DNA of 64,000 nt, taken from the sequence record MG655267.1. The stretch is one strand, 5' to 3'. Both the position numbers and the translations under genes were made by a program. Numbering within the stretch: position 1 is the first letter of the stretch; the number at the start of each line of letters is the position of its first letter. Positions 46,700-54,815 of the stretch are shown here, piece after piece. The notes beneath the pieces were generated by a model. That model worked only from the letters and a program-made list of their open reading frames with translations, was not told the origin of the DNA and searched no databases.

Positions 46700-46773
46700 T
46701 GAACACCCGTTTTGGTAATTTATTACGTAGTTGATCAATTATAAGAGAGATATTGTTTATTCGAGGGTGTTTC

Positions 46774-48294
46774 ATGGACAAGTTACCAAGTACCGCACTG
46801 CCAAAGGTGTCAATGGTTTTATACACCGATGGCGGTTGTCGTCAAAACATCGGAGGCTGGGGAATACATGGTTATTCCTGGCTGGTTGAAGACGATGACA
46901 AAAAGAAAAAGAAAAAGCCGGCGCGTGACGTCCCGTCAACGACTGGCTACATTGTAAAAGACGATCCGAAACTCGACAGTCGTGAAGTGGTCAGGCCCCA
47001 CGAAGTGATTGAAGGGTTTGGTGGGATTTTACCTAACACCACGAATAACGTTGCGGAACTCACAGCAACTATTAATGGTATTGACTTAGCACTACAGCAG
47101 AACACAGAAAAGCTCCTCGTCATCTCCGATTCCAAATATGTCGGCGACAATGCAAAGAATCAATTGCATCGTTGGATGAAAGCCGGCTGGAAGAAAGCGG
47201 ATGGCGGGGATGTTGCCAACAAAGAGCTGTGGGAAACCCTCAGCAGCAAACTTGATGAGCTGAAGTATCGCGGCATCTCGTTTGACATCGAATGGCTGAA
47301 AGGGCATGCGGGTCACCGTGGAAATCAGTTCGCTGACTACATGGCAACCCGTGGTGTCTTTAAAGGCCGTGTTGGTGACGCTACCCCGTATTATCAGATC
47401 CAGGATGCTGGTGAGTACGATAAGTACAAAACCGAACGTCCGCGCTTTGTCACGCACTCGCGCTGGTACTTCACGTTACAGACTGAAAAGTTGATGAACA
47501 AGAATGAACAGGGCTTGTACGAGTATTGCTTTGGCCACCCAAGTAAAGGGGATGCTGATCAGCAGTACTTAGGCAAAGCGTTAGCCGACACCGCCTTTAG
47601 TGTGGTGTGGTTGAAAGCACCTGAAGAGTGTTTGGATCTGGTTTATTCACGCACCAAAGAGATCGCTACCGACGTTTACGGTAACGCCTTCATTGGTCGC
47701 CTGGATAACATTTACAACTCATTCATTCACAAAGAGATCATGGACTACGGCGGGTCGTTATTGCAACGTGCGAATAAGTACAACAATGACATCACCAACT
47801 GTACCGATGCTCAAGTGGTGCGTGAGTGTAACCCGCCAGGTATCTCTTACCGGGCACTGTCGAATTTAGGACAGCTTAGTAAGATCCTGAATGAATTTGT
47901 CAGCGACAGTTTACCTGCGACAACCAGGGTGGTAGAGATTACTGACAAAATCTACCAGACCGTGAAAGGTAAGAAAGAAGATAAGCTGGCATTGCTCGGT
48001 TCGATTCGTCAAACCGACAAAGCGCTCAAGTTCGATGTACCGTGTGATGTACTCGACAAAGCGATCTCCGTCGAAGTTACAGCCACGCTTGGATTGACCT
48101 TACCCAACCGTAATACGTTAAACGGTCTTACGGAACTCAATCCAAAGGTATACCTGTTCTTGACAAAAGAGTCCGACATTGCATTTCGCTACGGATCGAT
48201 TGTGGTATGCGATGAAGGGTATTGCATCATGGCCAACGTATACGCTGACCTGCGTACGCTGTCAAAAAAGGATCTGGAGCGTTGCGGGCAGTAA
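46774..48294 (+). CDS. rnhA: Ribonuclease HI with long C-terminal extension (phiKZ-type)
   Basis: YTDGGC, TNNVAELTA, SDSKYV, V.NKELW, EWLKGHAGHRGNQFADYMA. Confidence 0.92.
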   Translation: MDKLPSTALPKVSMVLYTDGGCRQNIGGWGIHGYSWLVEDDDKKKKKKPARDVPSTTGYIVKDDPKLDSREVVRPHEVIEGFGGILPNTTNNVAELTATINGIDLALQQNTEKLLVISDSKYVGDNAKNQLHRWMKAGWKKADGGDVANKELWETLSSKLDELKYRGISFDIEWLKGHAGHRGNQFADYMATRGVFKGRVGDATPYYQIQDAGEYDKYKTERPRFVTHSRWYFTLQTEKLMNKNEQGLYEYCFGHPSKGDADQQYLGKALADTAFSVVWLKAPEECLDLVYSRTKEIATDVYGNAFIGRLDNIYNSFIHKEIMDYGGSLLQRANKYNNDITNCTDAQVVRECNPPGISYRALSNLGQLSKILNEFVSDSLPATTRVVEITDKIYQTVKGKKEDKLALLGSIRQTDKALKFDVPCDVLDKAISVEVTATLGLTLPNRNTLNGLTELNPKVYLFLTKESDIAFRYGSIVVCDEGYCIMANVYADLRTLSKKDLERCGQ

Positions 48295-49589: not shown

Positions 49590-50975
49590 ATGTTGTCATT
49601 CGGTGAATTTGTTGAGAAGTCACGCCCTATTCGACCTTTCTTGAATATCGGCGCGGGCTTTGATATCCCAACCGGTAGCTATCGTTTCGGTAAGCACGGT
49701 GAATCTATTCTTAATGGTGGTCTGGCGCCATTCATTGCGATTGTTGGTAAAGGCAACACCTTTAAAACAGCGATCGGTTGTTTCATGATGACCCGCGTGC
49801 TGGAGCGCTACAATAACTCTAACGGCCTGCACTACGATACCGAGTGTACGTTCAGTGCTGATCGTCTTACCAGTCTTACCAGTCGTCTGGGTCCGAATGC
49901 TGCTGCAGAGTGGCTGGCCAACGAACGTATCTACCTGACTGATGACTCCATCATTAAAGGTAACCAGTGGTTTAAGAAATCGGTGCAGGAATACTCCGAA
50001 GCGAAGAAGAAAGCCAAAATGGGTACGCTGCCGTTTGTGGATAAAGATGGGAACCTGATCCCGTACCCATACCCGACAGTCAACTTTGGCGATTCCATGT
50101 CTGAGATGAAATTCGACGATCTGGAAAAGAACTACGCCAAGATGGAAATCGGCCAGGGTGAAATGCAAACGGAAGCCATGCGTGTGTCGAATGCCAAACG
50201 CATGTTAATCGAAAAGACCCAGGGTTACGCCAACGCCGGCGGCATGTATGTCATCATGACAGCGCACTTAGGTAAAGAGCTGAACATGGACGGCAAACCA
50301 CAAGAGAAGAAAACCACCTTTATGAAACAAGGTGACAAAATCTCTAAGGTGCCTTCACAGATCCTCTCTCTGCCAAACAACGCCTGGGAGATCTCTACCG
50401 GTACGGTGTTGATCGATAAGAACACCAAAGAGTGGATGTACCCGAAACAGGGTCGCAATGACGTGGATACCAATGGTAACCCGGACATGATCACTCTGGT
50501 GGCGAAGAACCTGCGCGGGAAGAATGGCCCGTCTGGTGTGCCGTGGGAGTTCGTGATGTCACAGTCTGAAGGCTTGCTGCCATCCCTGACTGAGTTCCAC
50601 TACATTAAGAACAACGGCCGTTATGGCCTGGGCGGTAATGACCGTAATTATTATGTTGAATTGTGCCCAGATATCAAGCTGCAGCGCACCACCGTGCGTG
50701 ATCGCATCGACGATAACCCTGAGTTACGTCGGGCATTAGAGATCACCATGGAGATGTGTCAGATGCGTTTCCTGTGGCATACCCGCGATCCAAAGTACAA
50801 CATGACTCCTCAGGAACTGCGCGAAGGCCTGGAGAAGAAAGGGTACAAATGGGATCAGCTACTCAACACCCGTGGGTTCTGGACGTTTGAAGAAGACAAC
50901 CATCCATTACCATTCTTAAGCACAATGGATCTACTCCGCATGTATCATGATGAGTATCGCCCATACTGGCTGTAA
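49590..50975 (+). CDS. uvsX: UvsX/RecA-like recombinase (phiKZ-type)
   Basis: AIVGKGNTFKT P-loop, YDTE, NFGDSMSE Walker B-like, KNLRGKNGPSG; phiKZ-like synteny. Confidence 0.8.
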   Translation: MLSFGEFVEKSRPIRPFLNIGAGFDIPTGSYRFGKHGESILNGGLAPFIAIVGKGNTFKTAIGCFMMTRVLERYNNSNGLHYDTECTFSADRLTSLTSRLGPNAAAEWLANERIYLTDDSIIKGNQWFKKSVQEYSEAKKKAKMGTLPFVDKDGNLIPYPYPTVNFGDSMSEMKFDDLEKNYAKMEIGQGEMQTEAMRVSNAKRMLIEKTQGYANAGGMYVIMTAHLGKELNMDGKPQEKKTTFMKQGDKISKVPSQILSLPNNAWEISTGTVLIDKNTKEWMYPKQGRNDVDTNGNPDMITLVAKNLRGKNGPSGVPWEFVMSQSEGLLPSLTEFHYIKNNGRYGLGGNDRNYYVELCPDIKLQRTTVRDRIDDNPELRRALEITMEMCQMRFLWHTRDPKYNMTPQELREGLEKKGYKWDQLLNTRGFWTFEEDNHPLPFLSTMDLLRMYHDEYRPYWL

Positions 50976-51055
50976 GTGTACCCACTGTGGGAGAGGGTTA
51001 TCCCTCTCCTTCTTATACCGTCAGTAGAGGGAAATAAGCTAATAGGAAGCAGTAT

Positions 51056-51475
51056 ATGCTTAACAAAGAAATACGCATTGTCGTTGCGTCGACTAAAGGT
51101 TTCAACGACGCAGAGCGTTTAAAACTGACTATTGACGGCCTCCTGGAAGATATCTACTACCTCAACGAAGGGGTGGGCGATGAGGACGAGGAGTTGATCA
51201 CTGATGCCAAGATCGTTTTCATCACCAATGGCGAACACAAAACAGCGGCTGAGTTGCTGCCTGGTGTGTTGGGTGATCGGAACATCGACATCGAAGTGAT
51301 CAAGGTTGATTGGTCAAAAGGTAAGAAAGCGTTTTTTGATAACTGCGCTGTATTGGGTGCGAAGTCGACCCACGGCGTCATTTTTACGGACAGCAAAGAT
51401 GACGGGATGCAGACACTGCTGAAAGCATGTCTCGATGCCGGCTCACGCGTTCGTACTTATAGCTCTGCTATTTGA
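51056..51475 (+). CDS. Degenerate YspA-like SLOG domain protein
   Basis: IRIVVASTKGFND...IEVIKVDW.KGKKA...GVIFTDSKDDGM follows the YspA/DUF2493 pattern with key glycines lost. Confidence 0.55.
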   Translation: MLNKEIRIVVASTKGFNDAERLKLTIDGLLEDIYYLNEGVGDEDEELITDAKIVFITNGEHKTAAELLPGVLGDRNIDIEVIKVDWSKGKKAFFDNCAVLGAKSTHGVIFTDSKDDGMQTLLKACLDAGSRVRTYSSAI

Positions 51476-51488
51476 GAAAGGTAACCCC

Positions 51489-51935
51489 ATGATAGCCTCA
51501 GAAGCTCACGTTAGTATACTTGACGTTAATGTCACCCACGTTATATGCACAGTTAATTGCGAAGGGCATATGGGTCGTGGCATAGCCTTGTATCTGCGTA
51601 AGTGTATTCCGGGGCTATATGAGCGGTATAAACACCTGTGCAGTTTAGGGATCATCACGGTAGACAAACTCTGGATCTACCCATCACACCCCCGTCAGAT
51701 TCTCTGCTTTCCAACCAAAGATAAAACCTGGGAAGACAGCAAGCTTGAATGGATCGAAGCCAATCTCATAAAGCTTCGTGACAACTACAAAACAAAAGGC
51801 ATTGTCTCTGTGGCGATGCCTCCTCTTGGATGTGGAAACGGTAACCTAAAGTGGGATGAGGTGCGGAGCCTCATTTATGCCATCTTGGGTGATTGTGACC
51901 TTGAAGTCCACATCTGTTTAGGTAAACCGAAGTGA
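51489..51935 (+). CDS. Macrodomain ADP-ribose hydrolase (DarG/Poa1p-like)
   Basis: TVNCEGHMGRGIA, ILCFPTKD.W, I.SVAMPPLGCGNGNLKWDEV. Confidence 0.88.
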   Translation: MIASEAHVSILDVNVTHVICTVNCEGHMGRGIALYLRKCIPGLYERYKHLCSLGIITVDKLWIYPSHPRQILCFPTKDKTWEDSKLEWIEANLIKLRDNYKTKGIVSVAMPPLGCGNGNLKWDEVRSLIYAILGDCDLEVHICLGKPK

Positions 51936-51964
51936 GGGAAACACCCTGAATAGGAGCCAGTATT

Positions 51965-52846
51965 ATGTCTGATAACGCACACGTTTTACCCGATCCACGC
52001 GAAGATGGCAAGACGCATATCAACGTCTATAGCCGTGGCGCTACGTGGTTAGGACAGCAGCTTTCTAATATGTCCTACTACGACTTCGCACATCCACGCT
52101 ACGGCGTGTTCGCCTCGTTGGAGGGCTTCTGGTATTGGTTGTCTACGGGCAAGCAACACGAGGAGTTACGGAAGCTTGCCGGGGTCAAAGCGAAAATGAC
52201 TGGCCGGGAGTTCGAGACGATCCCAGATGACAACTTTGAAGAAGAGTTCAAAGAAGCCATGCGCCTGCGTCTGGAACAACACCCGATCATCGCCAATGCC
52301 CTGGCCGAATCCTTACTGCCGTTAAAGCACTACTATTGTTACGGCGGGAAAGTGGTCGACTTGTATGACCGCCACAAATGGCAGATGGACTTCTACGAGG
52401 AGTGGCGTAAAGCCAATGCTCCCGAAGACACCACCTTGGTGCTGTTGATCTCTGGTTCACGTAAAGAGAAAGACTACGACGCCTTTAAGCACATCGTGAT
52501 GACCTACCTGCAACCGTATATCGACAAGGTAAAGGACACGTACAAGATCACCCTGCTCTCGGGGCTCGCCTGGGAAGGTCCTGATGACATGGCAATTCGT
52601 CTGTGTCGGGAAGAAGGCTTCATGTTGATTGGCCTACCGGCGAAGTGGAAAGAGCAAGGCAAAGCCGCAGGCATGATCCGCAATGGTGCCATGGGGCGGT
52701 TGTGTAACAAAGCTCTGGTGTTCTGGGACGGTGAATCACCGGGGACAAAAGGGATGATTGATTACCTGAAGAAAAATACTATAGACCATCTTGTGTATTT
52801 ACACGGTAAACATGAACCTGACTGGAAAGCCCCGGAGACATCATGA
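51965..52846 (+). CDS. NADAR-like domain fused to YspA-like SLOG domain
   Basis: N-half HINVYS..LG..LSN, FASLEGFWYWL, A.G..AK..GR; C-half LLISGSR, LLSGLA.EGPD, PAKW..GKAAGMIRN, VFWDGESPGTKGMI. Confidence 0.72.
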   Translation: MSDNAHVLPDPREDGKTHINVYSRGATWLGQQLSNMSYYDFAHPRYGVFASLEGFWYWLSTGKQHEELRKLAGVKAKMTGREFETIPDDNFEEEFKEAMRLRLEQHPIIANALAESLLPLKHYYCYGGKVVDLYDRHKWQMDFYEEWRKANAPEDTTLVLLISGSRKEKDYDAFKHIVMTYLQPYIDKVKDTYKITLLSGLAWEGPDDMAIRLCREEGFMLIGLPAKWKEQGKAAGMIRNGAMGRLCNKALVFWDGESPGTKGMIDYLKKNTIDHLVYLHGKHEPDWKAPETS

Positions 52847-53517
52847 CCCCAGCACGCGAACAGACCCAGCAATTTGTGATCGAGGCTATTGCTGAGATTC
52901 TACCCGGTTCTAAGAACCGGGATATCTATATCGACTTCTTCTCGCGGTTGAGCGATGAGGCGTTTGATGCCCTGATGCAACGGATGGATGAAGACCAGGA
53001 GATCTTCCCCTTCTACCATCCGAACTTTACCGGCACGGTAATTGATGTTGAACGTGTGATCAAGTTAATTGAAAAGCACGGCGACACCATCATGGAGCAG
53101 CTCTGGGATATCGACCCGGAAACCGGGTTGCAGTACCTGACTCCATTGAAGTATCCGGTGCTGTTACTTCCGCTGCGTATTCAGCAGCAGAAGCTGCAGA
53201 AGAAGATGTCGATTCCCAAAGACAACAACCACATCGACGATCTGACTAACCAACCCACCACCGAATCCAAAGGAGCTTCCTTGTCTTACCCGGAAGTGCA
53301 GATCATCTATGCCATGGGTGGTGACAAGATCCTGGAAGAGACCATGAAGGTTCGTGGTGGTGATGAGAAGGCGTTTCGTGATTACAATAACGAAATCATT
53401 GCAAGCGGCGGTGTCACCATTGGCGCAATCAGCAGCAGCAAGACCAAAGTGAAGTCCACCAAAACCGTGCAAGTGATTCTTGAGGCCATGCACCTGAGCA
53501 ACAACCTGGCCAGTTAA
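52843..53517 (+). CDS. RNA polymerase beta subunit, C-terminal fragment (split phiKZ-type, probably virion RNAP)
   Basis: LTNQP..SKG.SLSYPEVQ..YAMG..KILEETMKVRGGD parallels the RpoB C-terminus (VTQQP..GKA..GEMEVWALEAYG..LQEMLTVKSDD); synteny with uvsX. Confidence 0.8.
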   Translation: MTPAREQTQQFVIEAIAEILPGSKNRDIYIDFFSRLSDEAFDALMQRMDEDQEIFPFYHPNFTGTVIDVERVIKLIEKHGDTIMEQLWDIDPETGLQYLTPLKYPVLLLPLRIQQQKLQKKMSIPKDNNHIDDLTNQPTTESKGASLSYPEVQIIYAMGGDKILEETMKVRGGDEKAFRDYNNEIIASGGVTIGAISSSKTKVKSTKTVQVILEAMHLSNNLAS

Positions 53518-53526
53518 GGATGCAAC

Positions 53527-54087
53527 ATGAGTAGCTTGATAAACAACCTGACCGGTAAAAACAAAGTTGAGTTCAGCCCGATTGATCTTGACAGTGAAGT
53601 CGAGCGGGTTGTCTCTGAGTATGTCGGTACATACTTACGTAACCGTATCTTTCTGGCGGCGCAATCGAAGATACCGGTGAATGAAGACCCGGGGTATCTG
53701 CAGATCGTAAACTTCTTAGCGTTGGTGAACATGGAGTTCAACCATATGCGCATGTGGTCTACGTCCGACATGACCAATACCGTCTGGCCACAGATCGTTG
53801 AAGATGAGTATGTGTTGCGCTTTGTGTTTAAAGGCACCACTCATGTCAGCGTGCGGTGCTTTGATGGCGATGTGCCTTTTCAGAAACTGGTTGACCATGT
53901 GGCCGGTTCCCTGAGTTGCATGTCGCACGGTGGAAATGAAATCATCGCTGCGGCGTTAACCCAGGTCCTGCCACGCAATGACGAACTGGTTGAGCTCTTT
54001 ACCGGTAACCAATGGTCGTTGTTCATTTATTACCTGACGCGCATTAACATCATTGAGATTGTGACCAATTCGGGAGGTAGTGTATAA
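53527..54087 (+). CDS. Hypothetical core-region protein
   Basis: 186-aa ORF with AAGGA SD. Confidence 0.75.
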   Translation: MSSLINNLTGKNKVEFSPIDLDSEVERVVSEYVGTYLRNRIFLAAQSKIPVNEDPGYLQIVNFLALVNMEFNHMRMWSTSDMTNTVWPQIVEDEYVLRFVFKGTTHVSVRCFDGDVPFQKLVDHVAGSLSCMSHGGNEIIAAALTQVLPRNDELVELFTGNQWSLFIYYLTRINIIEIVTNSGGSV

Positions 54088-54815
54088 TGGTGGGCGGAGA
54101 TCGTATTGGGTGTTACGTCCCCCTGGATGCTTTGTTGGATACCCGTATCGGGGTCATTGACCAAGTGGCCGGGGAAGTAGGATTGGAGTTGGTTAAGTCA
54201 TGGTACCATACTCGCACGGCTGATCGTTTTGACCGAAAAGGCACACCGTTAACGCAGGCGGCATATCAGGCAGCCTGGGCCGCCCGCAGTGAAGAGACCT
54301 TAAAGCGTACACGCATGACCTTTGTGCCGATGTACCTGATGAACCTGATCAGTCGCTTTAACACCTCACACGGCATGCCGATCATGGCCGCGACCTACAA
54401 CATCACGGTGAACACGTATCCGTATCGGTTATCCGATGAGCGCAAAGAGCAGCTGCAAAAGATCATCGAAACGTACACGTCGGGCATTGCTGAAATCACC
54501 ATTGATTACATCAGTCCAGCAGACCTGACTGTCGAGTACGTGAAGGCGAACTACTCCGTGTGCATCATGTATGAGTTTGATGAGTGGTTGATGCTGCATA
54601 AAGACGAGTTCAGCCAGACCCAGATGCCCGGGACCGTAATCCTGGCACCTAAGTTGTATCTGGCGGATGTGGGGGAAGATGTGATTAAGCGGGCAGAGCA
54701 GACCGATGGCTTTGCAGGCCTGAGCCTGGCACTCTGTGCATTGGTGACAGTGGTGTTCCTGGATGTAAGGTTGTTCTCTTATGTCACAGACACACCACCG
54801 AATCTGGATGAGTGA
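54087..54815 (+). CDS. Hypothetical core-region protein
   Basis: GGAGGT SD; LDALLDTRIG motif. Confidence 0.75.
   Translation: MVGGDRIGCYVPLDALLDTRIGVIDQVAGEVGLELVKSWYHTRTADRFDRKGTPLTQAAYQAAWAARSEETLKRTRMTFVPMYLMNLISRFNTSHGMPIMAATYNITVNTYPYRLSDERKEQLQKIIETYTSGIAEITIDYISPADLTVEYVKANYSVCIMYEFDEWLMLHKDEFSQTQMPGTVILAPKLYLADVGEDVIKRAEQTDGFAGLSLALCALVTVVFLDVRLFSYVTDTPPNLDE

Follow-up and report, generated by a model that had tools for sequence, protein, structure and literature searches.

The stretch of DNA that was analyzed (the window, 64 kb of record MG655267.1) is from an Erwinia Agricanvirus jumbo phage; it is 100% identical to Erwinia phage Bosolaphorus and 98% identical to phage RAY. As a reading of the sequence alone had proposed, three consecutive genes lie between a UvsX-like recombinase gene and a gene for a piece of the virion RNA polymerase beta subunit, the two flanks being assigned by the PHROG matches in Table 1. 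The three genes, ORF1, ORF2 and ORF3, run in the same direction, and their counterparts in RAY are gp151, gp152 and gp153, respectively. The recombinase gene, whose RAY product is nuclear (PMC10299810), is an upstream neighbor outside the cassette. The downstream gene (ORF4) is labeled 'vRNAP beta subunit 2' in RAY, and its product had no match in a sequence search of the PDB. The cassette is an accessory insertion flanked by two conserved genes. The stop codon of ORF3 does overlap the ORF4 start in an ATGA (positions 52843-52846), but the proposal that the cassette is coupled to the RNA polymerase gene read too much into this. In phage AH06, a small gene intervenes at this point and in other relatives there is a short gap, so functional coupling is rejected and the overlap is ordinary gene packing.

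Both ORF1 and ORF3 are preceded by a copy of a leader element that occurs only twice in the window. A separate transcription unit may begin at the hairpin directly downstream of uvsX; the pattern scan that detects this hairpin returned 10 sites where 5.2 were expected, which lends it weak support. For ORF2, the start at 51489 is preferred over the longest-ORF start at 51435 because it has a GAGAAAGG ribosome-binding site and agrees with the annotation of RAY gp152.

Table 1. Features of the cassette and its flanks (positions are those of the window).
Feature	Position	Strand	Evidence
UvsX-like recombinase gene (RAY gp150)	49590..50975	+	phrog_97, E 1.8e-56; RAY annotation
Terminator-like hairpin and T-rich tail, directly 3' of uvsX	50993..51008	+	consensus scan, sequence
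Leader element copy 1: GAGGGAAA, 7 bases, AATAGGAAGCAGTAT, ORF1 ATG	51027..51055	+	
ORF1, predicted SLOG (YAcAr-related) paralogue, 139 aa (RAY gp151)	51056..51475	+	hhalign, PHROG, Pfam matches of orthologues
ORF2, predicted DarG2-type macrodomain, 148 aa (RAY gp152)	51489..51935	+	PF01661, NCBIfam, PADLOC, PDB, PHIKZ104 homology
Leader element copy 2: GAGGGAAA, 8 bases, AATAGGAGCCAGTAT, one T, ORF3 ATG	51934..51963	+	
ORF3, predicted NADAR fold and SLOG, 293 aa (RAY gp153)	51965..52846	+	fold search, PHROG, motifs
ORF3 N-domain, residues 1-155, predicted NADAR fold of gp30.3/AdfN type	51965..52429	+	VIA-align, phrog_652, hhalign
ORF3 C-domain, residues 156-293, predicted YAcAr/YpsA-type SLOG	52430..52846	+	fold Z, motifs, PF10686
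Virion RNA polymerase beta-subunit piece (RAY gp154)	52843..53517	+	phrog_3233, E 1.7e-99

The ORF2 protein matches Pfam Macro (PF01661) with 38.3 bits (cut-off 22) over profile positions 3-117 of 118, and it matches the DarG profiles of NCBIfam (E 1.2e-37) and PADLOC (E 8.6e-41) as well as DarG macrodomains in the PDB (5m3i, E 1e-22; 5m31, E 8e-21). It is 38% identical to PHIKZ104, which is gp104 of PhiKZ (E 1.4e-17), and 36% identical to Asesino gp217. Two residues, N23 and K77 (the lysine of the PTK motif), are invariant in an alignment with these two proteins and with AH06. N23 is the residue mutated in PhiKZ N23A, and K77 is presumably the DarG catalytic lysine, after the T. aquaticus enzyme. 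The DarG C-terminal DarT-binding domain is absent, as ORF2 covers positions 8-145 of the 338 in the NCBIfam DarG model, and its score there, 129.9 bits, falls short of the equivalog cut-off of 250. ORF2 is a DarG2-type macrodomain and a homologue of PhiKZ gp104, which is AdfM, a nuclear anti-DarT2 enzyme that removes the DarT2 marks (Morgan et al. 2026; PMC13309987). Like AdfM, ORF2 stands alone as a macrodomain, about 150 aa long, with the asparagine and the PTK lysine kept, and is encoded by a nucleus-forming jumbo phage. Unlike AdfM, it belongs to a cassette that also encodes a NADAR and two SLOG domains, is fused to them in sister phages, and has an activity that is predicted here.

ORF3 has two domains. 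In the fold model (pLDDT 89.6), the N-domain (residues 9-155) matches three solved NADARs in a VIA-align search: PnNADAR with ADP-ribose (8bau; Z 11.0, rmsd 3.4, 138 residues aligned), YbiA (2b3w; Z 9.8, 140 aligned) and the G. lovleyi NADAR (8bat; Z 9.4, 139 aligned). No other match to this domain is present in the top 50 of the search, and Foldseek with the ORF3 model also lists 2b3w and 8bau. ORF3 matches phrog_652 (E 5.2e-36), as does T4 gp30.3 (E 9.2e-51), and hhalign aligns the N-domain to both T4 gp30.3 and E. coli YbiA (each 83%, E 8.6e-6); the identity to gp30.3 is about 25%. At E <= 0.1, ORF3 has no match to Pfam NADAR (PF08719) or Phage_30_3 (PF08010). Only one of 19 ORF3 homologues matches PF08719 (E 0.077), the Pfam NADAR model found nothing in the RAY genome, and T4 gp30.3 itself matches PF08010 with an E value of 4.6e-71. 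Searches of the PDB sequences with ORF3 and with its family profile gave nothing useful, and the solved NADARs were found by fold comparison only.

The NADAR catalytic glutamate is E43 in PnNADAR and E36 in T4 gp30.3, and the phosphate-binding lysine is K50 and K43, respectively (PMC11543638, PMC11125620, PMC11825919). ORF3 E53 is part of an LEG motif and corresponds in the alignments to T4 E36 and to the glutamate of the YbiA SEH motif; at least 90% of the 19 homologues keep it. A histidine in the last strand that replaces a YbiA glutamate or a BC4488 aspartate is a signature of phage NADARs (PMC11543638, PMC11125620). The nearly invariant H122 of ORF3, which directly precedes the final beta-hairpin in the model (strands 123-126 and 129-132), aligns with the histidine of the T4 LKH motif. 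As for the lysine, hhalign places ORF3 K63 no more than one position from T4 K43, but several homologues have Q, C or a different residue there, and the family has no conserved equivalent. These observations suggest that the N-domain is a NADAR fold of the gp30.3/AdfN type, distant from the NADARs that have been assayed.

T4 gp30.3 is AdfN, an anti-DarT1 protein that reverses guanine ADP-ribosylation (PMC11825919, PMC11125620). ORF3 shares with it phrog_652, the NADAR fold, the catalytic glutamate and the phage-type histidine in place of the YbiA glutamate. It differs from AdfN in the low identity, the lack of a Pfam match, the lysine and the fusion to a SLOG domain, as well as in an additional conserved N-terminal motif, HINxYS, that is shared with YbiA (IINFYS). 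T4 AdfN requires the T-even infection context for full activity (PMC11825919), and therefore activity of the ORF3 NADAR is not guaranteed. The catalytic domains of the cassette are also homologous to parts of the bacterial DarG antitoxins, namely, the DarG2 macrodomain and the DarG1 NADAR. The cassette differs from these systems in that it has no DarT partner gene, and ORF2, like AdfM, is without the C-terminal region of DarG2 that binds DarT. A DarG1-type N-terminal extension has been described, and phage NADARs do not have it (PMC11825919).

The C-domain of ORF3 (pI 8.5) has intact SLOG motifs: GSR, SGLAWEGPDD, IRN and WDGESPGT correspond to the canonical GSR, SGxAxGxD, RN and WDGxSxGT. ORF3 matches YAcAr (PF10686) over residues 160-229 with 22 bits (E 1.4e-4), which is below the cut-off of 28.2, and 12 ORF3 homologues match the same family (best E 7e-11). 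The closest fold is YpsA (2nx2; Z 12.5, rmsd 2.7, 125 aligned), whereas ShosA (Z 10.8), DprA structures (Z 10.1-10.5), the ThsA SLOG (7uxs; Z 9.8, no better than other SLOGs) and LOG enzymes together span Z 8.9-10.8. We predict that this domain is a YAcAr/YpsA-type SLOG. The RAY counterpart, gp153, is annotated as 'DprA-like' and, under the name "DprA", its GFP fusion co-localizes with the phage's DNA inside the phage nucleus (PMC10299810). ORF3 has the same fold and the same GSR and SGxAxGxD loops as DprA/Smf and YpsA, but it contains no further DprA domains and has no match to PF02481 (DprA) at E <= 0.1. With a NADAR as its N-terminal half, ORF3 is rejected as a member of the DprA/Smf family, and the 'DprA' label reflects the SLOG fold only.

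ORF1 is an acidic protein (pI 4.8) that has no Pfam match of its own and found nothing useful in a sequence search of the PDB. Its orthologues match YAcAr below threshold (E 3.4e-5 and 1.8e-4), the ORF1 family aligns with the SLOG half of ORF3 (hhalign 95.4%, E 1.7e-8, 113 columns), and ORF1 matches phrog_289 (E 1.6e-6), which is common to it and the ORF3 SLOG. YAcAr clusters account for 13 of its 30 matches in an Atlas feature search. The fold model has low confidence (pLDDT 66), and a search with it returned only generic Rossmann-like, CARF and USP matches (Z <= 9), which speak neither for nor against a SLOG. A motif comparison found none of the four canonical SLOG loop motifs in ORF1; in their place are ASTKG, NGEHKT, FDNC and FTDSKDDGM, which are invariant across 14 homologues. 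The sequence-only reading had described ORF1 as a degenerate SLOG. The SLOG assignment stands; degenerate is the wrong word because the gene is under purifying selection (dN/dS 0.12 against AH06), and this value together with the invariant replacement motifs rules out a decaying pseudogene. ORF1 is a divergent stand-alone SLOG paralogue. The other domain calls of that reading, a DarG-like macrodomain and a NADAR-like domain fused to an intact SLOG, hold up as well in profile searches and structure prediction, though the Pfam NADAR model misses the N-domain of ORF3.

The presence and arrangement of these domains in related phages display several patterns. Macro, NADAR and SLOG form a single protein of 422-429 aa in pEa_SNUABM_37 and in a metagenomic contig. 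Salmonella phage SA002 has a Macro-NADAR gene followed by a NADAR-SLOG gene, and Proteus phage 10 has a Macro-SLOG without the NADAR. Some ORF3 homologues carry the NADAR-SLOG unit in fusion with DUF4326, which is predicted to be a phosphatase. The gene immediately upstream of the fused or reshuffled genes always encodes an ORF1-type SLOG, and the dN/dS values for all three cassette genes are 0.05-0.12. The fusions and reshuffling imply that the Macro, NADAR and SLOG parts are tied together. Neither phrog_652 nor YAcAr was found in PhiKZ. The T4 gp30.2 gene, which adjoins AdfN, was considered as a SLOG helper and rejected, as it gave no SLOG signal and T4 has no YAcAr match.

Iyer, Burroughs, Anantharaman and Aravind (2021, 2022) had earlier compiled fusions of SLOG, Macro and NADAR domains from jumbo phages, and the cassette is a variant of these. 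In the accessible parts of these papers, a YAcAr SLOG is likewise fused or adjacent to Macro and NADAR domains, in some cases with DUF4326, but the predicted function is the processing of soluble signals, and the papers predate AdfM and AdfN; those same parts contain no mention of the Agricanvirus cassette, the diverged ORF1-type SLOG or nuclear localization (PMC7824862, PMC9503650). Iyer et al. argue that the phage combinations mainly process soluble ADP-ribose derivatives and not DNA adducts (PMC9503650).

The explanation that we consider best, with a probability of roughly 0.6, is that the cassette is a de-ADP-ribosylation module for phage DNA, as predicted from the sequences, the folds and the published precedents. 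It would be an accessory counter-defense of a nucleus-forming (chimallivirus) Erwinia jumbo phage, removing the ADP-ribose that host DarT-type toxins put on phage single-stranded DNA, and it would probably act in the phage nucleus. ORF2 would be the AdfM of this phage, a stand-alone DarG2-type macrodomain hydrolyzing thymine-linked ADP-ribose, and the ORF3 NADAR is predicted to hydrolyze guanine-linked ADP-ribose. We infer that the ORF3 SLOG either tethers the enzyme to its substrate, DNA that is single-stranded or ADP-ribosylated, or binds ligands of the ADP-ribose type, and that the acidic ORF1 probably serves the SLOG-bearing enzyme as a non-canonical partner or as a regulator, perhaps through contact with ORF3. 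The earlier suggestion that one locus could reverse both thymine and guanine ADP-ribosylation finds published precedents in AdfM (PMC13309987) and AdfN (PMC11825919); the NADAR is distant from T4 gp30.3 and escapes the Pfam model. A defense survey reports DarTG in some E. amylovora genomes and gives no genome count; because DarTG is perfectly correlated with two other systems in it, we infer that DarTG is rare in this species (PMC13480210).

A further, doubtful elaboration would make the intact SLOG of gp153 and the acidic SLOG of gp151 an active unit that either recognizes ADP-ribosylated single-stranded DNA and passes it to the attached hydrolase or works on the released ADP-ribose as a ligand gate or a third enzyme. 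Handing DNA to the attached hydrolase would explain why the SLOG is fused to Macro, NADAR or both. If such a unit exists, the cassette would be a machine for DNA de-ADP-ribosylation in the phage nucleus that is modular, SLOG-targeted and of dual specificity, and it could hint at the nature of the missing helper required by T4 AdfN for full activity.

It is also conceivable, but unlikely in our judgment, that the cassette degrades or captures NAD-derived small molecules of host immunity, for example, cyclic ADP-ribose isomers from TIR/Thoeris, ADP-ribose-1''-phosphate and similar compounds. Each of the three domain types (Macro, NADAR and SLOG) would cleave or bind its own bond, with ORF1 as a sponge. 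The intact SxPGT loop of the ORF3 SLOG, which we take to resemble the phosphate-binding loop of LOG enzymes, is consistent with such a role, as are the likeness to the ThsA SLOG bound to 3'cADPR and the DUF4326 fusions. The reading of Iyer et al. also favors it (PMC9503650, PMC7824862). However, the cassette's macrodomain resembles DarG2 and AdfM specifically and its NADAR belongs to the AdfN type, and both AdfM and AdfN work on DNA. RAY gp153 concentrates in the phage nucleus, away from the host cytoplasm, where these signals are produced and detected, and Thoeris is absent from the text of the E. amylovora survey (PMC13480210). The more specific claim, sensing or sequestration of the Thoeris signal by the SLOG, gained no support, as the domain is nearest YpsA, ShosA and DprA, with ThsA slightly lower, and the RAY orthologue is nuclear.

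More improbable still is that ORF3, and perhaps ORF1, are DprA-like single-stranded-DNA-binding loaders for the adjacent UvsX, which is how RAY gp153 has been annotated and discussed. All of the examined relatives have the ORF3 counterpart two genes downstream of uvsX, gp153 is nuclear as is UvsX, the fold resembles DprA structures, and PF02481 is weakly matched by six of the 19 homologues (best E 7e-5); Iyer et al. propose DprA/Smf as an additional single-strand binder in jumbo phages (PMC7824862). Against this, YAcAr is the better family match and YpsA the better fold match, half of ORF3 is a NADAR, the fusions in relatives to a DarG-type macrodomain or DUF4326 fit ADP-ribose chemistry and not RecA loading, and the acidity of ORF1 makes it poorly suited to DNA binding. 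A role as recombination mediator is partly compatible with de-ADP-ribosylation of phage DNA if the SLOG merely supplies DNA binding. We give very little credence to a clean-up role in RNA repair, with the macrodomain ('phosphatase / Appr-1-p processing') and NADAR removing ADP-ribose-phosphate by-products of tRNA repair or reversing RNA ADP-ribosylation, since the 'phosphatase' annotation of RAY gp152, the ORF2 match to phrog_335, its weaker likeness to TARG1/OARD1-type macrodomains in the PDB search (E 3e-6) and NADARs and macrodomains that reverse RNA ADP-ribosylation, as reported in the accessible parts of two papers (PMC11833690, PMC13036486), are set against DarG matches that are about 16 orders of magnitude better, flanking genes for UvsX and a piece of virion RNA polymerase, with no gene for an RNA ligase, Tpt1 or RtcB nearby, and the co-localization of gp153 with DNA in the nucleus.

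The 2026 study found that AdfM is required alongside the phage nucleus for DarTG2 resistance (PMC13309987). If the cassette is a de-ADP-ribosylation module for phage DNA, it suggests that some chimalliviruses also have an AdfN-type enzyme against guanine ADP-ribosylation, one that was already known in the nucleus as RAY gp153 under the misleading name 'DprA', and that both hydrolases are evolutionarily tied to SLOG domains. The domain assignments correct the annotations of RAY gp152 ('phosphatase') and gp153 ('DprA'). A DefenseFinder survey of anti-defense genes in Erwinia phages did not list the cassette (PMC13480210). In mass spectrometry data from RAY and Deimos-Minion lysates, gp154 is listed and gp151-153 are not, at a shallow coverage that is not evidence of their absence (PMC6690015). 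The natural fusion series, in which Macro is separate from NADAR-SLOG, joined in Macro-NADAR-SLOG or present as Macro-SLOG, offers ready constructs for asking what the SLOG contributes.

Over the region containing the three genes (50900-53600), the DNA matches Erwinia phage vB_EamM_Bosolaphorus at 100% identity; identity to the Agricanvirus jumbo phages Ea35-70, RAY and others (~272 kb) is ~98%. RAY has been characterised and is nucleus-forming (chimallivirus); in it, the genes are flanked by gp150 (UvsX-like) on one side and gp154 ('vRNAP beta subunit 2'; ORF4 here) on the other, and gp152 and gp153 are labelled 'putative phosphatase' and 'putative DprA-like protein'. The intergenic gaps between uvsX and ORF1, ORF1 and ORF2, and ORF2 and ORF3 are 80, 13 and 29 nt, respectively. 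The ORF2 start is preferred over the longest-ORF start at 51435 because it has a ribosome-binding site, GAGAAAGG, and agrees with RAY gp152. The dN/dS values against phage AH06 (0.12, 0.08 and 0.06 for ORF1, ORF2 and ORF3) indicate purifying selection on all three genes.

Coordinates of the cassette, its surroundings and comparison loci (L numbers, local coordinates)
Feature	Position	Strand	Description
phrog_3265 'ribonuclease'	46753-48294	+	513 aa
Terminator-like hairpin	50993-51008	+	just after uvsX
Leader, ~30 nt	51027-51055		before ORF1
ORF1	51056-51475	+	139 aa; RAY gp151
ORF2	start 51489	+	148 aa; RAY gp152
Leader, ~30 nt	51934-51963		before ORF3
ORF3	51965-52846	+	293 aa; RAY gp153
ATGA overlap	52843-52846		ORF3 stop/ORF4 start
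phrog_10888 and phrog_3328	53527-54815	+	186 aa and 242 aa
AH06, two additional small genes	L002 5042-5389 and 6274-6558		within the cassette
Asesino phrog_652 protein	L009 1279-2157		292 aa
SA002 gene pair	L016 3927-5803		290 aa, then 326 aa
Proteus phage 10 fusion	L017 3927-4757		Macro-SLOG

The DarG-like macrodomain that the sequence-only reading had proposed for ORF2 is borne out by HMM profiles and by solved DarG relatives. ORF2 scores 38.3 bits against Pfam Macro (cut-off 22) and matches both the PADLOC DarG profile (E 8.6e-41) and the NCBIfam DarG profile (E 1.2e-37, covering the macro half alone). Among solved structures it comes closest to two DarG macrodomains, 5m3i (E 1e-22) and 5m31 (E 8e-21); the match to TARG1/OARD1 is far weaker (E 3e-6). 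Among phage proteins, ORF2 is 38% identical to PhiKZ gp104 (PHIKZ104; E 1.4e-17) and 36% identical to Asesino gp217. Morgan et al. (2026) reported that PhiKZ gp104, which they named AdfM, strips DarT2-made ADP-ribose off DNA, rescues DarT2-poisoned cells, enters the phage nucleus by import and is required for DarTG2 resistance; the Asesino AdfM is likewise nuclear (PMC13309987). N23, the asparagine mutated in the PhiKZ gp104 work, and the lysine of the PTK motif are invariant in the alignment of ORF2 and its homologues. By these matches and conserved residues, ORF2 is an AdfM-type macrodomain and so a new member of the family published in 2026, and the 'phosphatase' label of RAY gp152 is outdated.

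The NADAR-like domain suggested for the N-terminal part of ORF3 agrees with its fold and with phrog_652, but Pfam NADAR does not find it: ORF3 has no match, and only one of 19 homologues reaches E 0.077. The AlphaFold model built with 19 homologues is confident (pLDDT 89.6). Within the top 50 of a Foldseek-independent search through 48,161 chains, residues 9-155 were matched by the three solved NADARs and nothing else: the Phytophthora NADAR with bound ADP-ribose (Z 11.0), YbiA of E. coli (Z 9.8) and the DarG1 NADAR of Geobacter lovleyi (Z 9.4); Foldseek concurs. The domain shares phrog_652 (E 5.2e-36) with T4 gp30.3 (E 9.2e-51), and the ORF3 family profile aligns with those of T4 gp30.3 and YbiA at 83% probability (E 8.6e-6) in both cases. 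E53 (LEG motif) pairs with T4 E36 and with the glutamate of the YbiA SEH motif, and H122 (LKH) pairs with the histidine of the T4 LKH motif; the T4 K43 lysine position is not conserved in the ORF3 family. A histidine in the last strand is the defining mark of 'phage NADARs', the YbiA type having Glu and the DarG1 type Asp (PMC11543638, PMC11125620). Together, sequence and model identify the domain as a putative NADAR of the phage gp30.3/AdfN type. T4 gp30.3 is active in vitro (PMC11125620) and, as AdfN, takes off the guanine ADP-ribose made by DarT1; for T-even phages to resist DarTG1 it is both necessary and sufficient (PMC11825919).

The C-terminal domain of ORF3 is an intact SLOG, as had been proposed, of the YAcAr/YpsA type and with the canonical GSR, SGxAxGxD, RN and WDGxSxGT loops. 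Its fold matches B. subtilis YpsA (Z 12.5), ShosA (Z 10.8), DprA (Z 10.5) and the ThsA SLOG with 3'cADPR (Z 9.8). The match to PF10686 (YAcAr) is sub-threshold for ORF3 itself (E 1.4e-4); 12 homologues match it, the best at 7e-11.

We consider, at a probability of roughly 60%, that the cassette is best read as a module for DNA de-ADP-ribosylation whose probable site of action is the phage nucleus. The AdfM orthologue (ORF2) would deal with thymine adducts and the distant, SLOG-fused AdfN-type NADAR (ORF3) with guanine adducts. The DarT enzymes act on single-stranded DNA. Phage NADARs do not have DarG1's N-terminal extension, and T4 AdfN requires a helper (PMC11825919); substrate binding could plausibly be supplied by the basic ORF3 SLOG (pI 8.5) with its DprA-like fold and loops. 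As to location, Prichard et al. (2023) found tagged RAY gp153 with the phage DNA in the nucleus, classed it as accessory rather than core, and read it as the recombination protein DprA (PMC10299810). Since this nuclear 'DprA' is a NADAR-SLOG by our analysis, RAY gp153 is likely a second nuclear anti-DarT factor alongside AdfM. The neighbouring gp154 behaves as a virion protein (PMC10299810, PMC6690015); gp151-153 are missing among the proteins detected by lysate mass spectrometry, whose coverage was shallow (PMC6690015). In E. amylovora, DarTG is presumably rare, since the defence survey of that species gives no genome count and reports it solely through a perfect correlation with two other systems; Thoeris is not mentioned there (PMC13480210).

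Among the alternatives, processing of a soluble signal, the view of Iyer et al. (PMC9503650, PMC7824862), seems unlikely to us. A DprA-like recombination mediator would be less probable still. The ORF3 SLOG has its fold in common with DprA, as well as the GSR and SGxAxGxD loops; ORF3 has no match to PF02481 (the DprA family), and the RAY label mirrors the SLOG fold alone. Clean-up during RNA repair is very improbable.

ORF1, itself without a Pfam match, is a diverged SLOG paralogue: its family aligns with the ORF3 SLOG by profile (95.4%, E 1.7e-8, 113 columns), both share phrog_289, orthologues in pEa_SNUABM_37 (E 3.4e-5) and SA002 (E 1.8e-4) match YAcAr, and a protein-atlas feature search leads to YAcAr clusters. 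The model of its fold, poor at pLDDT 66, matches generic Rossmann-like folds alone; the protein is acidic (pI 4.8). The canonical loop motifs are all substituted (ASTKG, NGEHKT, FDNC, FTDSKDDGM), and these substitutes are invariant across 14 homologues, down to 52% identity. The description 'degenerate' therefore fits the canonical site, which is lost, but not a decaying gene, as the dN/dS also indicates.

Just 21 phage records contain genes of the ORF1 type (Agricanvirus, pEa_SNUABM_37/48, Salmonella phage SA002 and Proteus phage 10). Canonical SLOG and NADAR domains are each widespread, in 489 and 535 phage records, respectively. In all contexts examined, the ORF1-type gene lies directly 3' of uvsX; a Macro-bearing gene comes next, then a ~222-aa RNA polymerase piece. 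The parts between are joined differently: Macro and NADAR-SLOG are separate in Agricanvirus, fused as Macro-NADAR-SLOG in pEa_SNUABM_37 and a 68-kb metagenomic contig (429/422 aa), arranged as Macro-NADAR and macro remnant-NADAR-SLOG in SA002, and reduced to Macro joined directly to SLOG, with no NADAR, in Proteus phage 10. These varying architectures show that the constant core is diverged SLOG, Macro and SLOG, with NADAR as an optional extra hydrolase, and the comparative evidence binds the parts of the cassette together. Some ORF3 homologues carry DUF4326 ahead of NADAR-SLOG, and the N-domain also occurs alone. AdfM is accompanied by neither phrog_652 nor YAcAr in PhiKZ, and in Asesino by a phrog_652 protein encoded elsewhere in the genome.

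A catalogue of jumbo-phage fusions joining YAcAr SLOGs with Macro, NADAR and DUF4326 dates from 2021-2022 (PMC7824862, PMC9503650). In the literature consulted on phage Macro/NADAR/SLOG proteins, we found no assignment of ORF3-type NADARs to the AdfN branch and no description of the RAY nuclear 'DprA' as a NADAR-SLOG, of the conserved diverged SLOG partner or of the natural fusion/fission series.

The second SA002 protein begins with a ~35-residue remnant of the macrodomain C-terminus, and the pair resembles a partial tandem duplication. The Asesino phrog_652 protein (E 2.4e-95 to the PHROG), encoded ~22 kb from the AdfM gene, has a long N-terminal extension, a large insertion, no Pfam match and no SLOG. 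Of the additional AH06 genes, one (a 115-aa ORF without a PHROG match) separates the macro gene from NADAR-SLOG; the other, a 94-aa phrog_625 gene annotated 'RNA binding protein', separates NADAR-SLOG from the RNA polymerase gene.

ORF3 does overlap the RNA polymerase gene by ATGA, but the coupling named in the sequence-only reading goes too far; given the intervening 94-aa gene in AH06 and gaps of 4-23 nt in relatives, it is ordinary operon packing.

The leader before ORF1 and ORF3 consists of GAGGGAAA, 7-8 bases, AATAGGA[A/G][G/C]CAGTAT and then ATG, and has no further copy in the 64-kb window. None of 100 shuffles had any match to the two-part pattern, which was derived from the same two sites. 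RAY has both copies, AH06 the ORF1 copy alone, and the leader is absent from pEa_SNUABM_37, SA002 and Proteus phage 10, in all of which Macro is fused to the next part (NADAR-SLOG, NADAR or SLOG). It looks like a copied element that arrived with the Macro / NADAR-SLOG split, and it may even out translation of the two SLOG-bearing genes.

Further out, the phrog_3265 protein has a recognisable RNase H domain at residues 93-202 only, with ~300 C-terminal residues beyond. The phrog_10888 and phrog_3328 genes, 3' of the RNA polymerase piece, are conserved, and genes of similar size occupy their positions in RAY, AH06, pEa_SNUABM_37, SA002 and Proteus phage 10, as judged by size and position.
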